Sequence record: MN159079.1
Length of the DNA stretch: 64,000 nucleotides
Direction: 5' to 3' (one strand)
Shown here: in pieces, positions 6,951 to 24,821 of the stretch
How positions within the stretch are numbered: position 1 is the stretch's first letter
How the letters are laid out: every line of letters starts with the position of its first letter
The notes under the pieces: generated by a model
The model's input: only the letters and a program-made list of their open reading frames with translations
Database searches by the model: none
Told to the model about the DNA's origin: nothing
Made by a program: the position numbers and the translations under genes

Positions 6951-7000
6951 GCCAGGGAACCCGTGAGGGTTCCCTGGCTCTTTATATACTTATTTTTTTT
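6951..7000. terminator. Bidirectional intrinsic terminator
   Basis: GCCAGGGAACCC-GTGA-GGGTTCCCTGGC, 12-bp stem, A-run before and T-run after, between convergent genes. Confidence 0.85.
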
Positions 7001-7341
7001 TATTCCCGTTGTACGCGGTTAGTCTGCGTGATCATCAGCAAGTCTTCACGAGTGATCATCTTGATTTCAGAGAGATGACTGAAGTCTGCTGTTGGATCGT
7101 CGATATCGTTGATGAACCCAATAACCCACATCATGTCTTCGGCGACTCGTTCGGTTATTGTTCCTGCACCGTACTCCCTAAGGAACTTATAGAAGTTATG
7201 ACGATAGGCAAACTTCTTACCTATGTCAACAATGGGAACACTACTAGCTCTCGCTTGTAATATTTCTTTACAAGACCTGACTATTACTTTGAATTCCTCA
7301 GTGTAGAAGTAATCATTCCCACTGGCGATACGTAAAGGCAT
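7000..7341 (-). CDS. Small conserved protein, possibly T4 gp53/LysM-like baseplate protein
   Basis: 113 aa with GGAG RBS on the minus strand. Pattern YRHNFYKFLREYG...MWVIGFINDIDDPTADF resembles gp53/tail-X-type proteins (inference). Confidence 0.55.
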   Translation of the reverse strand: MPLRIASGNDYFYTEEFKVIVRSCKEILQARASSVPIVDIGKKFAYRHNFYKFLREYGAGTITERVAEDMMWVIGFINDIDDPTADFSHLSEIKMITREDLLMITQTNRVQRE

Positions 7342-15111: not shown

Positions 15112-15127
15112 GTTCTTATTTTTTTTG

Positions 15128-16435: not shown

Positions 16436-17328
16436 TGACACAAGTTCACCTCTTTCAATACTGCTTGGGCACGGTACATGATTTCCGTAGTTTCAGAAAC
16501 GTCATTGATGAGGGACATCACTGCTCCTTCAATCTCTGCACCGGTCATCGGGGTCAGCAACATAATGCTGATCATGTTCTTGATGTATTCCACCGGATTG
16601 TTCAGCATCATCTCGCCTACTTCAGCAGCAAACAAGTTCATGTAGATATCCAGTTGTTGTTGGACACCACCGCCATCAACTATGTGACGTTCACCAATGG
16701 TTCCTTTAAGAAACGCTTTGTTGGCTACCAGACGCTTCTTAAAGAAGGGTTCCATGTACTGGTCATCATCCGTACTCAGAATGTTCAAACCAATCAACAT
16801 ACCTTTGGTAACATCGACGGAAACATCCTTAATAACGTACGGGAGTTTTTCTTGGTCCATCAACGGATCAACCAAAGCCATAACTTGGATGAAACGTTCC
16901 TTCGGATCGATACCCTCGTCTTCCAGCACATCTGACAAACCCAGGATGTCTTCTATACCGTCGACGGTATAGATGGTATCGAGGATCTTTGTCAGGATAA
17001 CCAACTCGTCAGGACCAATGTAGTCCATGTCGATCATGATCCCCATTGCTTGGAGGCAATCTACCAAAGCGTAAATGAGTATCTTACGTACTGCCTGAAT
17101 GGTATCAGGAGTATCGTATCCTTCATCGATCAAAACGGTCGTGATGTTAGTGTCCAGGAAACCATTATTTCCACCCGGAACACATTCCAGGGATAGCGTA
17201 ATTAAGTTGTACGCATCCTGTAATTGTATAGCCGCTTCAGGTGTACACCTGACCGCGAAGTCATCCCACATTTCGCCAAGATTATCACTGGCAAGGTTAG
17301 CGTTAGTGAGATCAATCATATCTGACAT
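16432..17328 (-). CDS. Conserved acidic protein co-transcribed with vRNAP beta' (phiKZ gp79-like, probable virion protein)
   Basis: 298 aa. Its stop overlaps the start of the vRNAP gene. Confidence 0.65.
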   Translation of the reverse strand: MSDMIDLTNANLASDNLGEMWDDFAVRCTPEAAIQLQDAYNLITLSLECVPGGNNGFLDTNITTVLIDEGYDTPDTIQAVRKILIYALVDCLQAMGIMIDMDYIGPDELVILTKILDTIYTVDGIEDILGLSDVLEDEGIDPKERFIQVMALVDPLMDQEKLPYVIKDVSVDVTKGMLIGLNILSTDDDQYMEPFFKKRLVANKAFLKGTIGERHIVDGGGVQQQLDIYMNLFAAEVGEMMLNNPVEYIKNMISIMLLTPMTGAEIEGAVMSLINDVSETTEIMYRAQAVLKEVNLCQ

Positions 17329-17370
17329 AATCTTGTCCTTTCAACTGTAAGTTCATAATGGAGTCATAAC

Positions 17371-18036
17371 ATGTCTAATAAGGTTCAACTTAAAGCAGCA
17401 CGGAAGCGTGCCGAACGTAAAGTAGCCTCCAGCCGTAAAAACGGTCGTCGTCTCGCTATCCATCAGAGTGTTCCTCAACTCATGGAAGCCGCCAAGAGCC
17501 AGATCGAACTCGCCCTGGAACGTCACCAGCTGGAGAGTCCTTTCGACATCGCCCGTCGAAGCGATGGTAGTGAAGTCCCTGCCATGGATAAGGCTGCTAT
17601 GATCCAAGGTTGCCGCAAGTCCACCACCGAAGTTTTCCGGATGTTCAGCTACCTGGCCGCAGCCAAGTCCCTGGTCGATCAGGGTCGCATCGAATTCGAA
17701 TTCAAACTGGACCTGGATCAGTGCGCTGCTGATATCGCTGCTCTGGATCGTCGCGTTATCCGTCTGAACGTTCTGGTAGAAGGTGAAGATGACGTCTTCG
17801 GTTACGAACTCATGGATATCGGTTCTACCCTGGAGAACCTGGGTTCCGTCATCTATGATGAAGTCTCTCGTCTTGAGCCGCAAGCTCTGGTCCTCGACAG
17901 CTACATCAATCATGCCGCCCAACAAGTCGTCGCTGATCCTGAAAATGAGATCGCCGACCTCAAGCAGGCCAACCAAACCGTACTCCAATCTCTGGCGTAC
18001 ACTCTGATCAAACCCCACATGGTAAATAAAGCTTAA
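17371..18036 (+). CDS. Conserved hypothetical protein with basic N-terminus
   Basis: GGAG RBS and biased codons. First gene of the 17371-20640 operon. Confidence 0.75.
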   Translation: MSNKVQLKAARKRAERKVASSRKNGRRLAIHQSVPQLMEAAKSQIELALERHQLESPFDIARRSDGSEVPAMDKAAMIQGCRKSTTEVFRMFSYLAAAKSLVDQGRIEFEFKLDLDQCAADIAALDRRVIRLNVLVEGEDDVFGYELMDIGSTLENLGSVIYDEVSRLEPQALVLDSYINHAAQQVVADPENEIADLKQANQTVLQSLAYTLIKPHMVNKA

Positions 18037-18047
18037 GGAGCTTTTGA

Positions 18048-19643
18048 ATGTCTGATCAAGAAAAACCCATCGATGTACTGCGCGCGGCAGTTCTTCTCGG
18101 TAAGCCGGACACTATTGGGTTCGGCATCCCCATCTTTACTGGCGGGCTCAAAGAGCAGCACCGTGTGATCCTGGAAGCAGCTCAGCTCTTCTATGCCATC
18201 CGTGAGCTCGAAAGCGAGATGGAAAAGAATGGTCGCACCGACCAGACCACACTGAACTCCCTCCGTGTTCGTTACACGGAACACACTGAGGAACACTTCC
18301 AGGGTGTAAGTGAGAAACAACTGGCAGAAATGCTGGTGAACTATTTCACTTTCTACCGACGGACTCTCGACCGCATCCAGATGCGCGATGATGTCACTGC
18401 CGAGCGCCAACACAAGCCCAATGCCAACGTGGTGACTACTCAACGCGGTCCCATCGGGATCATTAACAGTATCAAACCCGGTAAGCTCGGGAATCTGTCC
18501 ATGAAGGACAGGATGCGGAAGAACTTCGCCAAATCCTCCGGTAGTGTGGATGGCTTCTCGATCATGCTGATGAACAGCCGGGTCTTCCTGAAGATCAAGC
18601 TCCCCACTCCCATGGACCTTCTGTTGTTGATGAACAAGATCGCCAACAAACTCTCTGGGTTTGGTAAGCGTGTTCGGGCGTCATCCCTGGAGCTGGAACG
18701 TGCACTGATCGTCCGTGAGGTTGTCGAGTTCGTTATCGAGATGGCGACCTACTGGAGTGTCTCTGACATCCTGGATGCCCGCGAACTGCTCAACGTAATC
18801 AAGGAAAGCGACGCCAACCACCTGGCTGTGGCAATCCTTGCAGCTTCTGCACCCAAAGGTCTGAACTACCGTATGAGCTGCCTGGCTCACAAGTGTAACT
18901 TCAGCGATGACGTTCTGATCGATGCGGCCAACATGGTTCACTTCGACAACGAACGTTACCCGGCGAAGTACATGGAACAGGTCCAGATGATCTTGAACAC
19001 AGGTCACAAGTTCTCCATCCAGGAACTGCGTGATTCCGATGTTCCCTTTATCGATACTGACGGGACCGAGATCGAGACACGGTTCACCATGAACGATGGA
19101 TCCGTGAGCATCGAGCTCAAAGAGCCGTACCTCGCAGATTACTTCGAGTGTTTCGATAACGCCGCCGCTCGTATTAACCCTCAACTCCGTCAACTGGCTG
19201 TCCAGTTCTCTGAACCTGAGCGCTACAAGCGCGAGTACCAGAGCTACATGGGTAGTATCCGGACCAACAACTACACGCAGTGGGTAGATAAGATCATCTT
19301 CCACGTAGCTGCCGGTGAAGAAGGTGAAGACGAAGTAATGTCCCGCGGGGATAACCCGAAAGAGTTCGATGAAGGTCTGATCGACTGCCTGGGTAGCCAA
19401 GAAGAACTCGCCGGTATCTTGCTGGAGCGTGTCATCAAGGTCATCCCCCGCCTGTCCTACACCAGTGTAGGGATTCTGTCAGCAGAGTGTCCTCAGTGCA
19501 AACAAACCACTGATGAAGAAGTTACCAAGGTTCATGGTGGTTATACCCCCATCGATCCGTTCCTGACTTTTTTCGACCACACCCAAATGTTGATAGAACT
19601 GCGGAGGGAGCTGGCGATTACACAAGAGGAGCTTCTTTCCTAG
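18048..19643 (+). CDS. Putative tail/baseplate assembly chaperone (T4 gp26-like), 0-frame product
   Basis: 531 aa. Cys pairs SCLAHKC and ECPQC, and an IKESDANHLAVAILAAS...C...C...ID pattern like gp26/TAC families. Slippery heptamer near the 3' end. Confidence 0.6.
   Translation: MSDQEKPIDVLRAAVLLGKPDTIGFGIPIFTGGLKEQHRVILEAAQLFYAIRELESEMEKNGRTDQTTLNSLRVRYTEHTEEHFQGVSEKQLAEMLVNYFTFYRRTLDRIQMRDDVTAERQHKPNANVVTTQRGPIGIINSIKPGKLGNLSMKDRMRKNFAKSSGSVDGFSIMLMNSRVFLKIKLPTPMDLLLLMNKIANKLSGFGKRVRASSLELERALIVREVVEFVIEMATYWSVSDILDARELLNVIKESDANHLAVAILAASAPKGLNYRMSCLAHKCNFSDDVLIDAANMVHFDNERYPAKYMEQVQMILNTGHKFSIQELRDSDVPFIDTDGTEIETRFTMNDGSVSIELKEPYLADYFECFDNAAARINPQLRQLAVQFSEPERYKREYQSYMGSIRTNNYTQWVDKIIFHVAAGEEGEDEVMSRGDNPKEFDEGLIDCLGSQEELAGILLERVIKVIPRLSYTSVGILSAECPQCKQTTDEEVTKVHGGYTPIDPFLTFFDHTQMLIELRRELAITQEELLS
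19568..19574 (+). other. Candidate programmed -1 ribosomal frameshift site (T TTT TTC)
   Basis: X XXY YYZ heptamer in the correct codon phase (ACT TTT TTC). The -1 frame has no stop from 19517 to 20089. Confidence 0.7.
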
Positions 19644-20089
19644 AACTGCCGGGTTCGCTCTCTCAATTCCAAAAGGCAGAAGAAGTAGCCATCCGTGAGT
19701 TCATAGCACTACAAGAATTAGAGGGGCTCGAAACAAGAGCCCTTTATAAGAAAGAGTTAAAGATATTCATGAAATCCAGAGGTTGGATAAGTGAACGCGA
19801 TTCTTTCTCCATTCTGTTGTGTTATAACCGTTCTCTAAGAGAGTACACACACAGATGGTCACCCAGTTCTTTTGGTGAAATGTTTGGGTATCGTGAGTAC
19901 TCTGAGATCATACCGCTTAAAGAGTTTCTTACAACCCCAATGGCGGTGGTCGAGGATATTTTGGAAGGTGTCGGTAAAGGCCGCACCGATATTAAGAAGG
20001 CGAAGGACGCAGCACGGTCTGCCGACGAAAAACGCAAGGAAGATCCTGCAAGCATTCTTCAACGAGAACTTAATAAACTCAAGGGGTAA
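19574..20089 (+). CDS. -1-frame extension of the chaperone (GT/E'-like); track ORF 19769-20089 is its C-terminal part
   Basis: Open frame with no ATG or good RBS until 19769. C-terminal FGYREYSEIIPLKEFLTTPMAVVEDILE resembles TAC-extension/gp51-like segments. Confidence 0.6.
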   Translation, partial: RPHPNVDRTAEGAGDYTRGASFLELPGSLSQFQKAEEVAIREFIALQELEGLETRALYKKELKIFMKSRGWISERDSFSILLCYNRSLREYTHRWSPSSFGEMFGYREYSEIIPLKEFLTTPMAVVEDILEGVGKGRTDIKKAKDAARSADEKRKEDPASILQRELNKLKG

Positions 20090-20094
20090 TTTAA

Positions 20095-20640
20095 ATGGGT
20101 AAGTATATTCCGCCTGTTACCGAGCAACGCGACTCCGCTGTTGTTCTCCAGGGCGAGAAAGAAAAGAACATGGACACCTCCGTTGGTGTTCCTACCGAAG
20201 TTCGTCCGACCACACCGGTCGAAATCTACAAAGATAAGATCGACGAGTTCGTCGGTTTCCTCAAACACGAGAACAACGCCGGTCAGCCCGAAATCCGTGC
20301 TAAGTATCAGGTTGGTGTTATCACCATGTTCGATCTGATCCTGGGAATGGATTACAACGAGATGGAAGAAGTTATCGACCACCTGGTCATTACTATTGGT
20401 AAGCACCCGCACGTCTTCACCAACAGTAACACCCTGGCACCGCTCTACGCAGTCGAGAACCGCAAGTTGCTCGTAGCAGCGTCCATCCAACGCTACAAGT
20501 GGTTCATGACCTTCTTCATCGGTCTGTCGAACAACATTCGTCAGCGTGCGCAGTATGTCGAAGGTTACGACATTACTCGGTTCATTTCTATGTTCCCTGT
20601 TAAGGCTCGTGAGAACCTCCACAACTACATCTATCGTTAA
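20095..20640 (+). CDS. Conserved hypothetical protein
   Basis: 181 aa, last gene before the terminator at 20653. Confidence 0.75.
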   Translation: MGKYIPPVTEQRDSAVVLQGEKEKNMDTSVGVPTEVRPTTPVEIYKDKIDEFVGFLKHENNAGQPEIRAKYQVGVITMFDLILGMDYNEMEEVIDHLVITIGKHPHVFTNSNTLAPLYAVENRKLLVAASIQRYKWFMTFFIGLSNNIRQRAQYVEGYDITRFISMFPVKARENLHNYIYR

Positions 20641-20652
20641 TTCGATGTAAAG

Positions 20653-20688
20653 ATCCCTCTCCCTCCGAAAGGATGGGAGAGGGATTTA
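20653..20688 (+). terminator. Intrinsic terminator
   Basis: ATCCCTCTCCCTCC-GAAA-GGA(T)GGGAGAGGGAT. Confidence 0.75.
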
Positions 20689-20706
20689 TATTGTCTATAA
20701 CTTTTC

Positions 20707-20726
20707 AAACCTACATTATTAAGGTG
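20707..20726 (+). promoter_or_regulatory. Putative early promoter
   Basis: AAACCT-ACATTAT-TAAGGTG, a one-mismatch copy of the motif. Confidence 0.6.
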
Positions 20727-20784
20727 ATGGAAACATCAACGTTATCAATGGTGATAACGCACTAACGCTGCTAAGGAGCACACA

Positions 20785-21618
20785 ATGTTTAAATCAACTT
20801 TGATCAACACCACCCCGGTAGTCTCTGTTATTTCCGAGCAAGAAAACGAATTCAACTTTCTGCTCGTTTACGGACGGACATCAGGCGGAAGAGATATTCC
20901 ATTGGTGATAATGGATACTGAAGCGAAAGACATCAGGACGCAAGCCGAAGTGTTCCTGAGAATGATGGACGACAAGTCCATTGACAATCATAACGCATCC
21001 CACTTTATATGGCGGGGTCCGTATCTGATTCTCCGTACTTTCGGCCACCGTTCTTTTGAAGCAACCATCAGCGATTCCAGAACTGAAAAGTTCGGGTCGA
21101 GAGAAGGGCACAAGAACGTACTGAAACGTTTGATCGGAGTGATCACCGAGTTCCTTGCCGGACAACACGATTACTCCAAGTACAGCGTCGAGACTGATAC
21201 GATCAAACACGTCTTCTACAATGAGAGCGTGATTGTTGACGGGACCGCCAGTATCTCTCGGGTTCAATCTTTCAATGCTGTTTGTAAAACACTGGAAGAA
21301 CCCAACAAGAAGATGTTGACGTTGACGAGTATTAAGGGTGCTATCAACATCGTGGTCACCGAAGAAATGGATCTCTCTGGTCTGCTCAAATCCATTGAAC
21401 GTGGTGTAGGTGGCGAGAGTTTTGTCTCCACGGAAACTGGTGCGAATAACTTCGGACACTCCAGTTTGATCTACCACGTTATGGAGCCCAACAAAGGTTG
21501 TAACGAACCACACATCCGGATTATCCATAGTACCAAATCCAAAGGAGCGTCGTTGGCCTTTATAGCGACCCCTTTGTTTATTGAACGGATAACAGAAGTT
21601 GTAATGTCTGCACGGTAA
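20785..21618 (+). CDS. Accessory early hypothetical protein
   Basis: AAGGAG RBS, 277 aa, with its own promoter and terminator. Confidence 0.75.
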   Translation: MFKSTLINTTPVVSVISEQENEFNFLLVYGRTSGGRDIPLVIMDTEAKDIRTQAEVFLRMMDDKSIDNHNASHFIWRGPYLILRTFGHRSFEATISDSRTEKFGSREGHKNVLKRLIGVITEFLAGQHDYSKYSVETDTIKHVFYNESVIVDGTASISRVQSFNAVCKTLEEPNKKMLTLTSIKGAINIVVTEEMDLSGLLKSIERGVGGESFVSTETGANNFGHSSLIYHVMEPNKGCNEPHIRIIHSTKSKGASLAFIATPLFIERITEVVMSAR

Positions 21619-23056: not shown

Positions 23057-23078
23057 CACACCCATAACTTATTTTTTT

Positions 23079-24821
23079 TTATGCCGCTTCTTTCTGTTTC
23101 TGCTCTTCAATGAATGGCATCACTCGGCTTGCATAGAAGTCATTTGCTTCAACCAAACTAGGCATACCGAAGATTGTTGTGCACAGGGTGTTCGCATTAG
23201 CTATCGGACTACTGGCGTAGTTAACACCGAGTCGTCTATAATCCAAGCGATCAAGACCTTGTACTTCGCAAACCTCCAGCTTAGTGGTCTTGTTAGACAC
23301 GTTAAGCGCAACGGTAACGTGAGGGTACGCACCAGTTACGTCAATGTCGTCCGTGGAACCACGCCCCATTGATTTCCAGTCCTGGAGACCGGTATACAAC
23401 GCTCTGCCATTGGCTTCGTTGAGTTCAGCATGAAGCAACGCAATCCAGTCACGAAGATCTGGCTTAAGTTCTTTGAACGGATCCTCTTTACGACGACCAA
23501 CAGTTCCCCAAACATAACCATTTTGTTTTGCAATGAATGACAGTTTGTCAGAGATCATTGACGGTTGGGATTGATAGGAACGAAGCTCAGAAGAAGTAAC
23601 CAGAGACGGTAACGACAGTGAGTAATCGTTAGTTGCTCGGTTAAGATCTTCGATAGTCCAGTTATCTCGGATGTTGTACATCGCGTACAGATACGGTTCA
23701 TGTTTGAGCATCCATTTGTGCCACTCAGCAGAACCAGCCTGGAGATGTGAACCTTTCTCCGTATATAACTTACCTTCGATACCTTCTGATTCAGCTGTGA
23801 ACTGAAGACTGTACGATTCACGTTTGCCACCAGGGGCACGTTTAATAGCATAGAACGACATGCCATCGAACCACTGCCACTTAGCGGGTGCTTGAACCAC
23901 GGGGAATTTCTCGTGGTTATCCAACGGTGACTTAGAACCATCTACCTTCGTCTTAAACTGCCGACCAGGATAATAAAGATAATCTTGGTAAGCACGTGGA
24001 CAATCAGGGTCAGAGTAAGTCATCGCCAGGTCGTAACCTTCATTCAACAAAGCTTCCTGGTTCGCTTCCATATCAAAGTTAGCGTTCCATGAAACAATGA
24101 AGTCAGGCCCTACCTTGTGCCACCACTGAATGTTGTTGTAAACAATCACCCCAGGACGATCGGCCAACTCATAAACGATTTCAACGTTATGTTTGTCGAT
24201 ATACTCTTGGAGATATTGCTTCTCGTACAACTTCAAATTCTTCATGATGGTTTCGTCATCATGACCGTGGAATATCTCACGGAGACCACACCAGTAAACC
24301 TTATTCTTGATGGTGGTAGATGCCATGTTGATTGGACCGGTACTGCCGTCATCCAGAATGAAGGTCTCCACGTCATACGCGGCTACTGAGTACGCTTCTT
24401 GCGGTTGGTGATCTGGGTACTTATCGAAGAACTTCTGCTTGAAGATAACCGGAACAGTTTCCTGACATCCAAATACGAATGGGTTATTCTTCAACATGGT
24501 GATGTCAGCTTTACGGTCAGGACGACCATGCAACACCTTACTAATGTTGACATGAAGTCGTGCTGCGTTAGAACTGAACTTGTCACACTTCTTGATTTCG
24601 ATGTAGTCTCGGTTATCCTTGAAGGTCCGATATTTGGGTTTCACCACATAGAAATCAGTTTTGTAATCTTCCAAGAAGACGAGACGATCTGTACGCCCAC
24701 CCTCTTCGTCGATCTCAGTAATCTTGGCTGTCAGAAGGTCATGGTCCGGGTCATTCTTGTGATAGCTCAAATACGCGTGTTTGCAAACACGAGCAATTAC
24801 TTTTGGTTTCGTGGTTAGCAT
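23079..24821 (-). CDS. Split family-B DNA polymerase, N-terminal part with 3'-5' exonuclease and motif A (phiKZ gp82-like)
   Basis: ExoI AYDVETF, ExoII WNANFD, ExoIII YNIRD, PolB motif A DIDVTGAYP. The ORF ends without motifs B and C. Confidence 0.85.
   Translation of the reverse strand: MLTTKPKVIARVCKHAYLSYHKNDPDHDLLTAKITEIDEEGGRTDRLVFLEDYKTDFYVVKPKYRTFKDNRDYIEIKKCDKFSSNAARLHVNISKVLHGRPDRKADITMLKNNPFVFGCQETVPVIFKQKFFDKYPDHQPQEAYSVAAYDVETFILDDGSTGPINMASTTIKNKVYWCGLREIFHGHDDETIMKNLKLYEKQYLQEYIDKHNVEIVYELADRPGVIVYNNIQWWHKVGPDFIVSWNANFDMEANQEALLNEGYDLAMTYSDPDCPRAYQDYLYYPGRQFKTKVDGSKSPLDNHEKFPVVQAPAKWQWFDGMSFYAIKRAPGGKRESYSLQFTAESEGIEGKLYTEKGSHLQAGSAEWHKWMLKHEPYLYAMYNIRDNWTIEDLNRATNDYSLSLPSLVTSSELRSYQSQPSMISDKLSFIAKQNGYVWGTVGRRKEDPFKELKPDLRDWIALLHAELNEANGRALYTGLQDWKSMGRGSTDDIDVTGAYPHVTVALNVSNKTTKLEVCEVQGLDRLDYRRLGVNYASSPIANANTLCTTIFGMPSLVEANDFYASRVMPFIEEQKQKEAA

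Follow-up and report, generated by a model that had tools for sequence, protein, structure and literature searches.

In the tail assembly chaperone pairs lambda G/GT, P2 E/E+E′ and Mu gp41/gp42, a −1 slip takes place on a phased heptamer close to the upstream open reading frame's (ORF's) 3′ end (PMC5009743). Here we discuss a gene of Aeromonas phage D9, called A below and belonging to the phage core gene family cg18, which carries such a heptamer at the same place and is followed in the −1 frame by a small ORF, B. The stretch of DNA that was analysed, called the window, comprises 64,000 nucleotides (nt) of record MN159079.1 (window position equals record position minus 124000), and its positions 17000–21000 are 100% identical to D9 (MN159079.1, genus Ludhianavirus, 260.9 kb). 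A short earlier note, made from the letters of the window, had proposed that a −1 slip at the heptamer gives a short and a C-terminally extended form of the protein. The comparison of relatives strongly supports this claim, and we consider programmed −1 ribosomal frameshifting in the cg18 gene to be probable, with a likelihood of roughly 0.8. The same note had placed the DNA in a jumbo, phiKZ-like phage, which is right, as LAh10, a close relative of D9, is among the chimallin-encoding phages (supplement, PMC10299810).

The likeness to the G/GT pairs goes further, in that the extension of cg18 is without a start of its own and the arrangement is kept across very divergent sequences (PMC5009743); the short form should likewise predominate, with the long form being rare. 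However, cg18 is without sequence or profile similarity to these pairs, constitutes a separate gene family, exceeds their length four to five times and has a position other than between the tube and tape-measure genes. In addition, its heptamer consists of T's throughout, apart from variation of the last base. In the T7 gene 10A/10B case, a minority of the molecules acquire a C-terminal extension through a low-level −1 slip near the end of the gene. The slip predicted here is also near the end of a phage gene and would also add a C-terminal extension, but the T7 product is a virion protein, whereas that of cg18 appears to be absent from the virion.

Bacterial dnaX (tau/gamma), the two forms of which arise in a fixed ratio, is similar to cg18 in being an apparently non-structural protein with two isoforms and a −1 slip on a homopolymeric heptamer, and cg18 also has a replication and transcription gene neighbourhood. 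In dnaX, as described in the introduction of PMC4066793, the slip leads to a shortened protein, and it is an upstream Shine–Dalgarno-like (SD-like) element and a downstream hairpin that drive it. In cg18, on the other hand, the slip would extend the protein and no stimulators were found, and A matches no ATPase or clamp-loader family. Finally, the OrfA–OrfAB arrangement of the IS3/IS1-family insertion sequence (IS) elements uses heptamers of the same class, and U_UU.U_UU.C, one of the motifs known from IS elements, is efficient in E. coli (PMC4066793). The sites of these elements usually have a downstream hairpin or pseudoknot and give transposase products, while cg18 is a phage core gene.

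The slippery site in D9

The features of the locus that are needed for the discussion, in window positions, are the following.

18048–19643, + strand: ORF A, the predicted short isoform in the 0 frame; 531 codons plus TAG; D9_0169, phiKZ gp77 orthologue, cg18
19568–19574, + strand: slippery heptamer T TTT TTC, in X XXY YYZ phase in the frame of A
19574–20089, + strand: −1-frame extension, 171 codons plus stop; would replace the last 22 codons of A
19574–19643, + strand: dual-coding overlap of the 0-frame tail of A with the start of the extension; its third-position diversity and Pro positions 2 and 4 are discussed below
19644–19768, + strand: bridge, "intergenic" by annotation; −1 frame without stop or start
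19769–20089, + strand: ORF B from its first ATG, 106 amino acids (aa); constitutes the extension's conserved domain; matches PHROG 19747 (unknown function)

The triplets ACT TTT TTC at 19566–19574 are codons 507–509 of A, and the TAG is the 23rd codon after TTC, which confirms both the coordinates and the phase that had been noticed earlier. In the −1 frame, no stop occurs between 19517 and the one that ends at 20089. The first ATG in this frame is, as had also been claimed, the one at 19769, which corresponds to codon 66 of the extension, and it was found in addition that no GTG or TTG occurs before it. In the bridge, the other two frames contain 4 and 2 stops.

The mechanism that we envisage is as follows. 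Most ribosomes would read A to its TAG, which gives a product of 531 residues. Some of them would slip back by one base at T TTT TTC, where the P-site tRNA-Phe sits on TTT and the A-site tRNA-Phe on TTC. Both tRNAs would then re-pair with TTT, and decoding would continue in the −1 frame from 19574 to 20086. The 22-residue 0-frame tail would in this way be swapped for the 171-residue extension, the C-terminal two thirds of which are the annotated ORF B. The slipped product is computed to 509 + 171 = 680 residues, in agreement with the fusion of about 680 aa that had been expected beside the 531-aa form. The phage would then have a single core protein, apparently absent from the virion, in two isoforms, and the slippage efficiency would determine their ratio.

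Runs of six or more T's are depleted in the window, where TTTTTTY has 9 matches at 4 places, compared to 28 ± 6 expected. The run of the heptamer is the only one of these inside an ORF in the 64 kb, the other three places being intergenic. The latter coincide with three exact + strand copies of CTTATTTTTTT, extended by one or two T's (6989–7001, 15115–15126 and 23068–23080). Each copy lies in a gap between convergent genes, 3′ of a short G+C-rich inverted repeat, and the copies look like shared intrinsic terminators of + strand units.

Conservation and selection at the junction

Searches by tblastn with A and ORF B gave, besides D9, 28 further loci, that is, 29 isolate genomes representing 26 lineages: D9, LAh10, PS1, CF8, AerS_266, ZPAH34, pEt-SU, AhC3_1, N1M2, SXP01, Yubaba, Survivor, AH04, OBP, Kc263, FishSpeaker, phiKZ, EL, RisingSun, Miami, VP4B, 201phi2-1, PCH45, AgentSmith, SPN3US, RSF1, AH06, JM-2012 (a Halocynthia phage) and Asesino. 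The protein identity of these relatives to D9 is 19–46%. A scan of IMG/VR yielded 30 loci, of which 26 are distinct and about 18 belong to uncultivated phages, with the same arrangement in all.

A phased heptamer, T TTT TTC, T TTT TTT or T TTT TTA, is present in all 29 isolate genomes and in each of the 26 distinct IMG/VR loci. Relative to A, the frame of B is −1 in 29/29 isolate genomes, and in every one of them the −1 frame is open from a point 6–114 nt 5′ of the heptamer to the stop of B. The earlier note had suggested an alignment of the orthologous junctions and had named loss of the heptamer, or a stop before the downstream ATG, as the outcome that would speak against recoding. The alignment shows the heptamer and the open −1 frame to be kept in every relative examined, and neither kind of loss was encountered in any of them.

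The extension has a length of 149–183 codons in every isolate genome and IMG/VR locus, and the tblastn coordinates show that the lengths of the gap between A and B vary by multiples of three only. The first ATG of the −1 frame, on the other hand, wanders from extension codon 33 to 88 in the isolates (a range that excludes four lineages, which were not tabulated) and from 28 to 101 in the IMG/VR loci. An initiation codon near the site is absent in 27 of the 29 isolate genomes, the exceptions being RSF1 and 201phi2-1. We have also looked for natural in-frame fusions of A and B among 1.84 billion representative proteins, with the 171-residue −1-frame piece as the query, and none was found (0 of 29 relatives of the extension, with sizes of 74–172 aa). 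This means that the frame offset is maintained and not accidental.

Some of the individual loci deserve mention. The 200-kb Bacillus phage vB_BspM_AgentSmith (locus L025, 1922–4074) has a cg18 homologue with T TTT TTA and a −1 extension of 164 codons, which shows that the signal for recoding persists in a phage that infects a Gram-positive host. In phiKZ (locus L017, 3490–3993), the 0-frame tail after the heptamer consists of 11 unconserved codons, and the −1 frame comprises 165 codons, with its first ATG at codon 86, which is the start of PHIKZ076.4; relative to the other lineages, there is an insertion directly after the site. One metagenomic protein of 172 aa, P0014, is a gene-caller product that starts at the T run in the −1 frame, a start-like codon abutting the run.

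We now consider the bases of the site. The codon 5′ of the run is ACT, AAT, AGT, GCT, GGT, GTT or CTT, that is, it encodes seven different amino acids, with the third base always being T. In the IMG/VR loci, a preceding Ser is AGT in 20/20 cases and a preceding Asn is AAT in 6/6. The last heptamer codon of Kc263 and AgentSmith is TTA (Leu), and the six T's are still kept. In a codon alignment of 18 genomes, the first Phe codon is TTT in all 18, while two or more codons occur in each of the 31 other invariant or nearly invariant degenerate columns. In three further columns with conserved Phe, TTC and TTT are present in proportions of 12/5, 12/5 and 4/13. The turnover at all of the control synonymous sites shows that these positions would otherwise be free to change, and selection thus seems to act on the bases of the heptamer rather than on the residues.

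The −1 frame was analysed next to the site in 12 genomes with identical geometry. In the 30 codons 5′ of the site, the mean pairwise differences at 0-frame positions 1, 2 and 3 are 0.43, 0.37 and 0.65, respectively, while the corresponding values for the 22-codon overlap are 0.32, 0.35 and 0.42, such that the excess at the third position is much smaller. Pro is found at extension positions 2 and 4 in 12/12 of these genomes, and the overlapping 0-frame residues vary (H/Q/R, T/A/R/H and Q/R). When the extension is aligned over 15 lineages, including phiKZ and EL, P2 is invariant and P4, L23 and H93 are nearly so. The 0-frame tail of A is also conserved in the alignment of orthologues, as expected if both products matter, and we infer that both isoforms are needed.

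The bridge gives a similar picture. All five substitutions between D9 and LAh10 are at third positions of the −1 frame and synonymous there; the same changes are at second positions of the 0 frame, where four of them alter the residue. Over six independent pairs of genomes, 92 of the 157 differences in the bridge are at −1-frame third positions, compared to one third expected, and there are no indels (the counts for the individual pairs are 5/5, 11/24, 29/58, 20/37, 18/24 and 9/9). Since the overlap is without a start codon, the selection observed there does not come from independent initiation. The substitution patterns show purifying selection on the −1 frame that begins directly after the site.

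It can also be pointed out that the last ca 20 nt of A, at 19622–19643, are nearly invariant at all codon positions in the 12 genomes of the D9 group, with a diversity of 0.19–0.21. They form a purine-rich block with GAGGA, followed by a pyrimidine block. The invariance may arise from dual coding, and an RNA signal is another possible explanation.

These data can be compared with the present annotation. All 29 GenBank records give A and B as two separate coding sequences, and a joined or slippage feature is present in none of them. In D9 they are two hypothetical genes, D9_0169 and D9_0170, which bears out that the pair is hidden by the annotation, as had been proposed. The start of D9_0170 is at window position 19880, and that of the second gene in the near-identical LAh10 genome is at the equivalent of 19769. 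Terminator and promoter scans found no promoter-like or terminator-like + strand site in the bridge; a hairpin at 19724–19742 followed by TTT was considered as a terminator but fails the criteria of the terminator scan.

It could be argued that the records are correct, with A and B being ordinary genes and B starting at ATG 19769. The uninterrupted bridge and the run of T's would then be incidental. A weak purine-rich stretch is indeed present 12 nt 5′ of this ATG, and gene callers give stand-alone proteins of 74–172 aa. However, ATG 19769 is not a conserved column, and the annotated starts are scattered over 27–218 nt after the stop of A. Two ordinary genes would also have to account for gaps that differ by multiples of three, for a bridge with the substitution pattern of −1-frame third positions, for selection on the −1 frame within an overlap that offers no start codon, and for the frozen synonymous sites of the heptamer. 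We regard this explanation as highly improbable.

Nature and efficiency of the proposed slip

The long protein could in principle also be made by transcriptional slippage, in which the phage RNA polymerase stutters on the T6–T7 run, such that a fraction of the transcripts receive an extra U. Inserting one base there leads to the identical downstream frame and the identical junction residues, and chimalliviruses transcribe with their own multisubunit polymerases. The avoidance of T7 runs in all frames of bacterial genes possibly comes about through transcriptional slippage (PMC4066793), and the depletion of T runs in the window can be viewed in the same light. However, many lineages (the D9 group and Kc263) have only six T's, a stretch shorter than the runs known to give appreciable polymerase slippage. 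Furthermore, the six phased T's are fixed and the last base of the heptamer is C, T or A, which is the pattern expected of tandem tRNA slippage. For these two reasons, transcriptional slippage is rated lower and is considered to be unlikely, and the slip is presumably ribosomal.

With ribosomal frameshifting as the preferred mechanism, a stimulator can be expected to be either a structure 5–9 nt downstream of the site or an upstream SD-like element, both of which are common but not obligatory. The earlier note had suggested a stimulatory stem.

19604–19664, + strand: proposed stem, 19604–19612 pairing with 19657–19664; present in the minimum-free-energy fold; not supported as a stimulator

Its two arms, GGAGGGAGC (19604–19612) and GCTCTCTC (19657–19664), do exist, and the stem begins 29 nt after the site. 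The stimulatory role could not be substantiated, as the structure is no more stable than shuffled sequences and is not conserved. The folding that had been recommended as a check of the D9 site turned out negative, since the sequence 3′ of it folds no better than its shuffles (z = +1.65 for 126 nt and +1.15 for 90 nt). In VP4B, EL and phiKZ there are stems beginning 2–6 nt after the site. As to the heptamer itself, H_HH.U_UU.Y motifs rank with the most efficient ones for −1 shifts in E. coli. Even when no stimulator is present, U_UU.U_UU.C and U_UU.U_UU.U give more than 0.1% shift, and IS elements make use of both (PMC4066793).

It is important to point out that a number of observations weigh against programmed frameshifting in cg18. 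The 90 nt after the site have z values from +1.15 to −2.0 in 16 lineages, the consensus fold of 12 genomes amounts to −3.4 kcal mol−1 with no covariation, and no SD-like element was found 5′ of the site. A conserved stimulator was thus found neither in the folds of the 16 lineages nor in the 12-genome consensus, and because of this the slip efficiency is probably low. The long form is probably a minor product. In RSF1, a −1-frame GTG is located 36 nt 5′ of the heptamer, and in 201phi2-1 there is a TTG at extension codon 9, and independent initiation may for this reason take place in some lineages. The peptide pattern used to retrieve the IMG/VR loci has the first Phe as its last residue, which biases these loci toward a conserved site, though not toward a given choice of codons. 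A naive joint probability for 22 genomes is ca 10^−22 for the site and ca 10^−29 for the open frame, but the lineages are related, such that these values are upper bounds on the significance and overstate it. Finally, the long product is a prediction from sequence, and sequence alone fits ribosomal and transcriptional slippage alike.

The cg18 family and its possible function

Orthologues of A were found by tblastn in 135 phage records with A of D9 as the query and in 226 with phiKZ gp77. The searches in both directions, together with the conserved synteny, identify A as the orthologue of gp77. The alignment of A between D9 and phiKZ ends at residue 509, which is the last 0-frame codon of the heptamer. 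The protein phiKZ gp077 corresponds to Goslar gp081 and RAY gp267 and is the Chimalliviridae core gene cg18, listed as "hypothetical protein" (Table S3, PMC10299810). The gene is not restricted to chimallin-encoding phages (PMC10299810), which fits the homologue in the Bacillus phage. The "gp77" of the Goslar structure paper is a small capsid decorator of Goslar and not the orthologue of cg18, which is Goslar gp081.

The gene is part of a conserved block, identical in its make-up at all of the loci, which consists of a gp79-like virion protein on the opposite strand, a gp78-like protein, A and B, and in D9-type genomes a protein of about 180 aa follows B. Genes for the virion RNA polymerase, a helicase and a DNA polymerase are located near A. 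The genes within 6 kb of A in D9 encode RNA polymerase, helicase, DNA polymerase and hypothetical proteins, and in phiKZ and 201phi2-1 the gene is located between the gp78/gp79/gp80 block and the helicase gp75. The length of A in the relatives is 507–705 aa. Two pairs of cysteines are found in the protein.

18879–18896, + strand: first Cys pair, Cys278/Cys283, invariant in 18 orthologues
19488–19499, + strand: second Cys pair, Cys481-Pro-x-Cys484; C481, P482 and C484 invariant in 18 orthologues

The invariance of the four cysteines (278, 283, 481 and 484) suggests a metal site. The earlier note had called the pairs gp26/TAC-like (TAC, tail assembly chaperone), and both pairs do exist; the assignment, on the other hand, is not supported, as no match to a tail-chaperone or T4 gp26-type family was obtained in Pfam, PHROGs, NCBIfam or PDB.

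The protein appears not to be part of the virion. In 201phi2-1, gp138 and gp139 are marked as identified in virions by mass spectrometry, while gp136 and gp135 are not, and no PDB chain matched a profile containing phiKZ gp77. The phiKZ atlas and the Goslar structure papers contain no mention of the cg18 family, of a frameshift, or of a chaperone or tape measure.

Searches of Pfam, PHROGs, NCBIfam and PDB, in which A and the 171-residue −1-frame piece were used as separate queries, gave no function for A, for the extension or for the orthologues. The only PHROG matches were 4585, 8054, 19747 and 24181, all of unknown function. A weak match to a PHROG "portal protein" (E = 0.003) was dismissed as chance, as were matches to de novo designed helical proteins. 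Single-sequence AlphaFold2 models, calculated with no alignment, have pLDDT (predicted local distance difference test) values of 36.6 and 42.5 and are unusable. No function for gp77 was found in the literature. The labels given to homologues in the records disagree with each other, being "putative ZipA-like cell division protein" for loci L002, L006 and L019 and "baseplate protein" or "putative baseplate hub assembly protein" for L025, L028 and KPN8. A low-complexity N-terminus, present in some of the homologues, seems to be the origin of the former, the latter have no stated evidence, and neither was reproduced by any of the libraries searched.

The earlier note had taken the pair to be a tail assembly chaperone of the lambda G/GT type, with the slip setting the chaperone ratio. 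The architecture is alike in the place of the slip, near the 3′ end, and in the extension, which lacks a start of its own; A appears to be non-virion from the 201phi2-1 mass-spectrometry marks and from the lack of a PDB match, and the baseplate names of some records, for which the evidence is unstated, would also be compatible. However, A has 531 aa (507–705 in the relatives), compared to about 100–150 aa for such chaperones. Its neighbours are RNA polymerase, helicase, DNA polymerase and the gp79-like head protein, and neither tube nor tape-measure genes lie in the vicinity. In addition, there is no tail-chaperone family match in Pfam, PHROGs or NCBIfam, and the core-genome table lists cg18 as hypothetical. 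The identification does not stand up with respect to family membership, gene position (between tube and tape measure) or size, and we consider it very unlikely.

A more general variant is that the short and long forms of cg18 constitute an assembly chaperone, set in ratio, for a large substructure of the virion, such as a tape-measure-like protein or the packaged polymerase or inner body. It would then be a giant, sequence-unrelated analogue of G/GT, the slip efficiency of which is set, say, by the nascent chain or by ribosome-binding phage factors and not by mRNA structure. This we put forward as a speculation with a small chance of being right. That cg18 is a zinc-binding assembly or replication factor is, similarly, a guess.

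We finally turn to what programmed frameshifting in cg18 would mean. No published description of a frameshift in phiKZ-like phages was found in the literature that can be searched without subscription, and a 2016 review of recoding mentions neither phiKZ nor jumbo phages. The earlier note's statement that no such description was known agrees with this, and there is none annotated in the records either. The kind of recoding is a known one, and the new elements are its use in the cg18 family and its conservation across the whole virus family. To the classic cases of tail chaperones, dnaX and IS elements, it would add for the recoding field a −1 frameshift with deep conservation, kept from Bacillus- to Pseudomonas-infecting phages with no evident RNA stimulator.

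The nucleus-forming, phiKZ-like jumbo phages are studied intensively, and about half of their ca 68 core genes are without a known function. One of these core genes, cg18 (phiKZ gp77), would be mis-annotated in every record examined. The small downstream "gene", annotated as phiKZ gp76.4, EL ORF048, 201phi2-1 gp135, SPN3US gp40 and under further names, probably represents the C-terminal domain of the second isoform. Proteomic, interaction and essentiality screens that treat A and B as separate would therefore misassign peptides and phenotypes.

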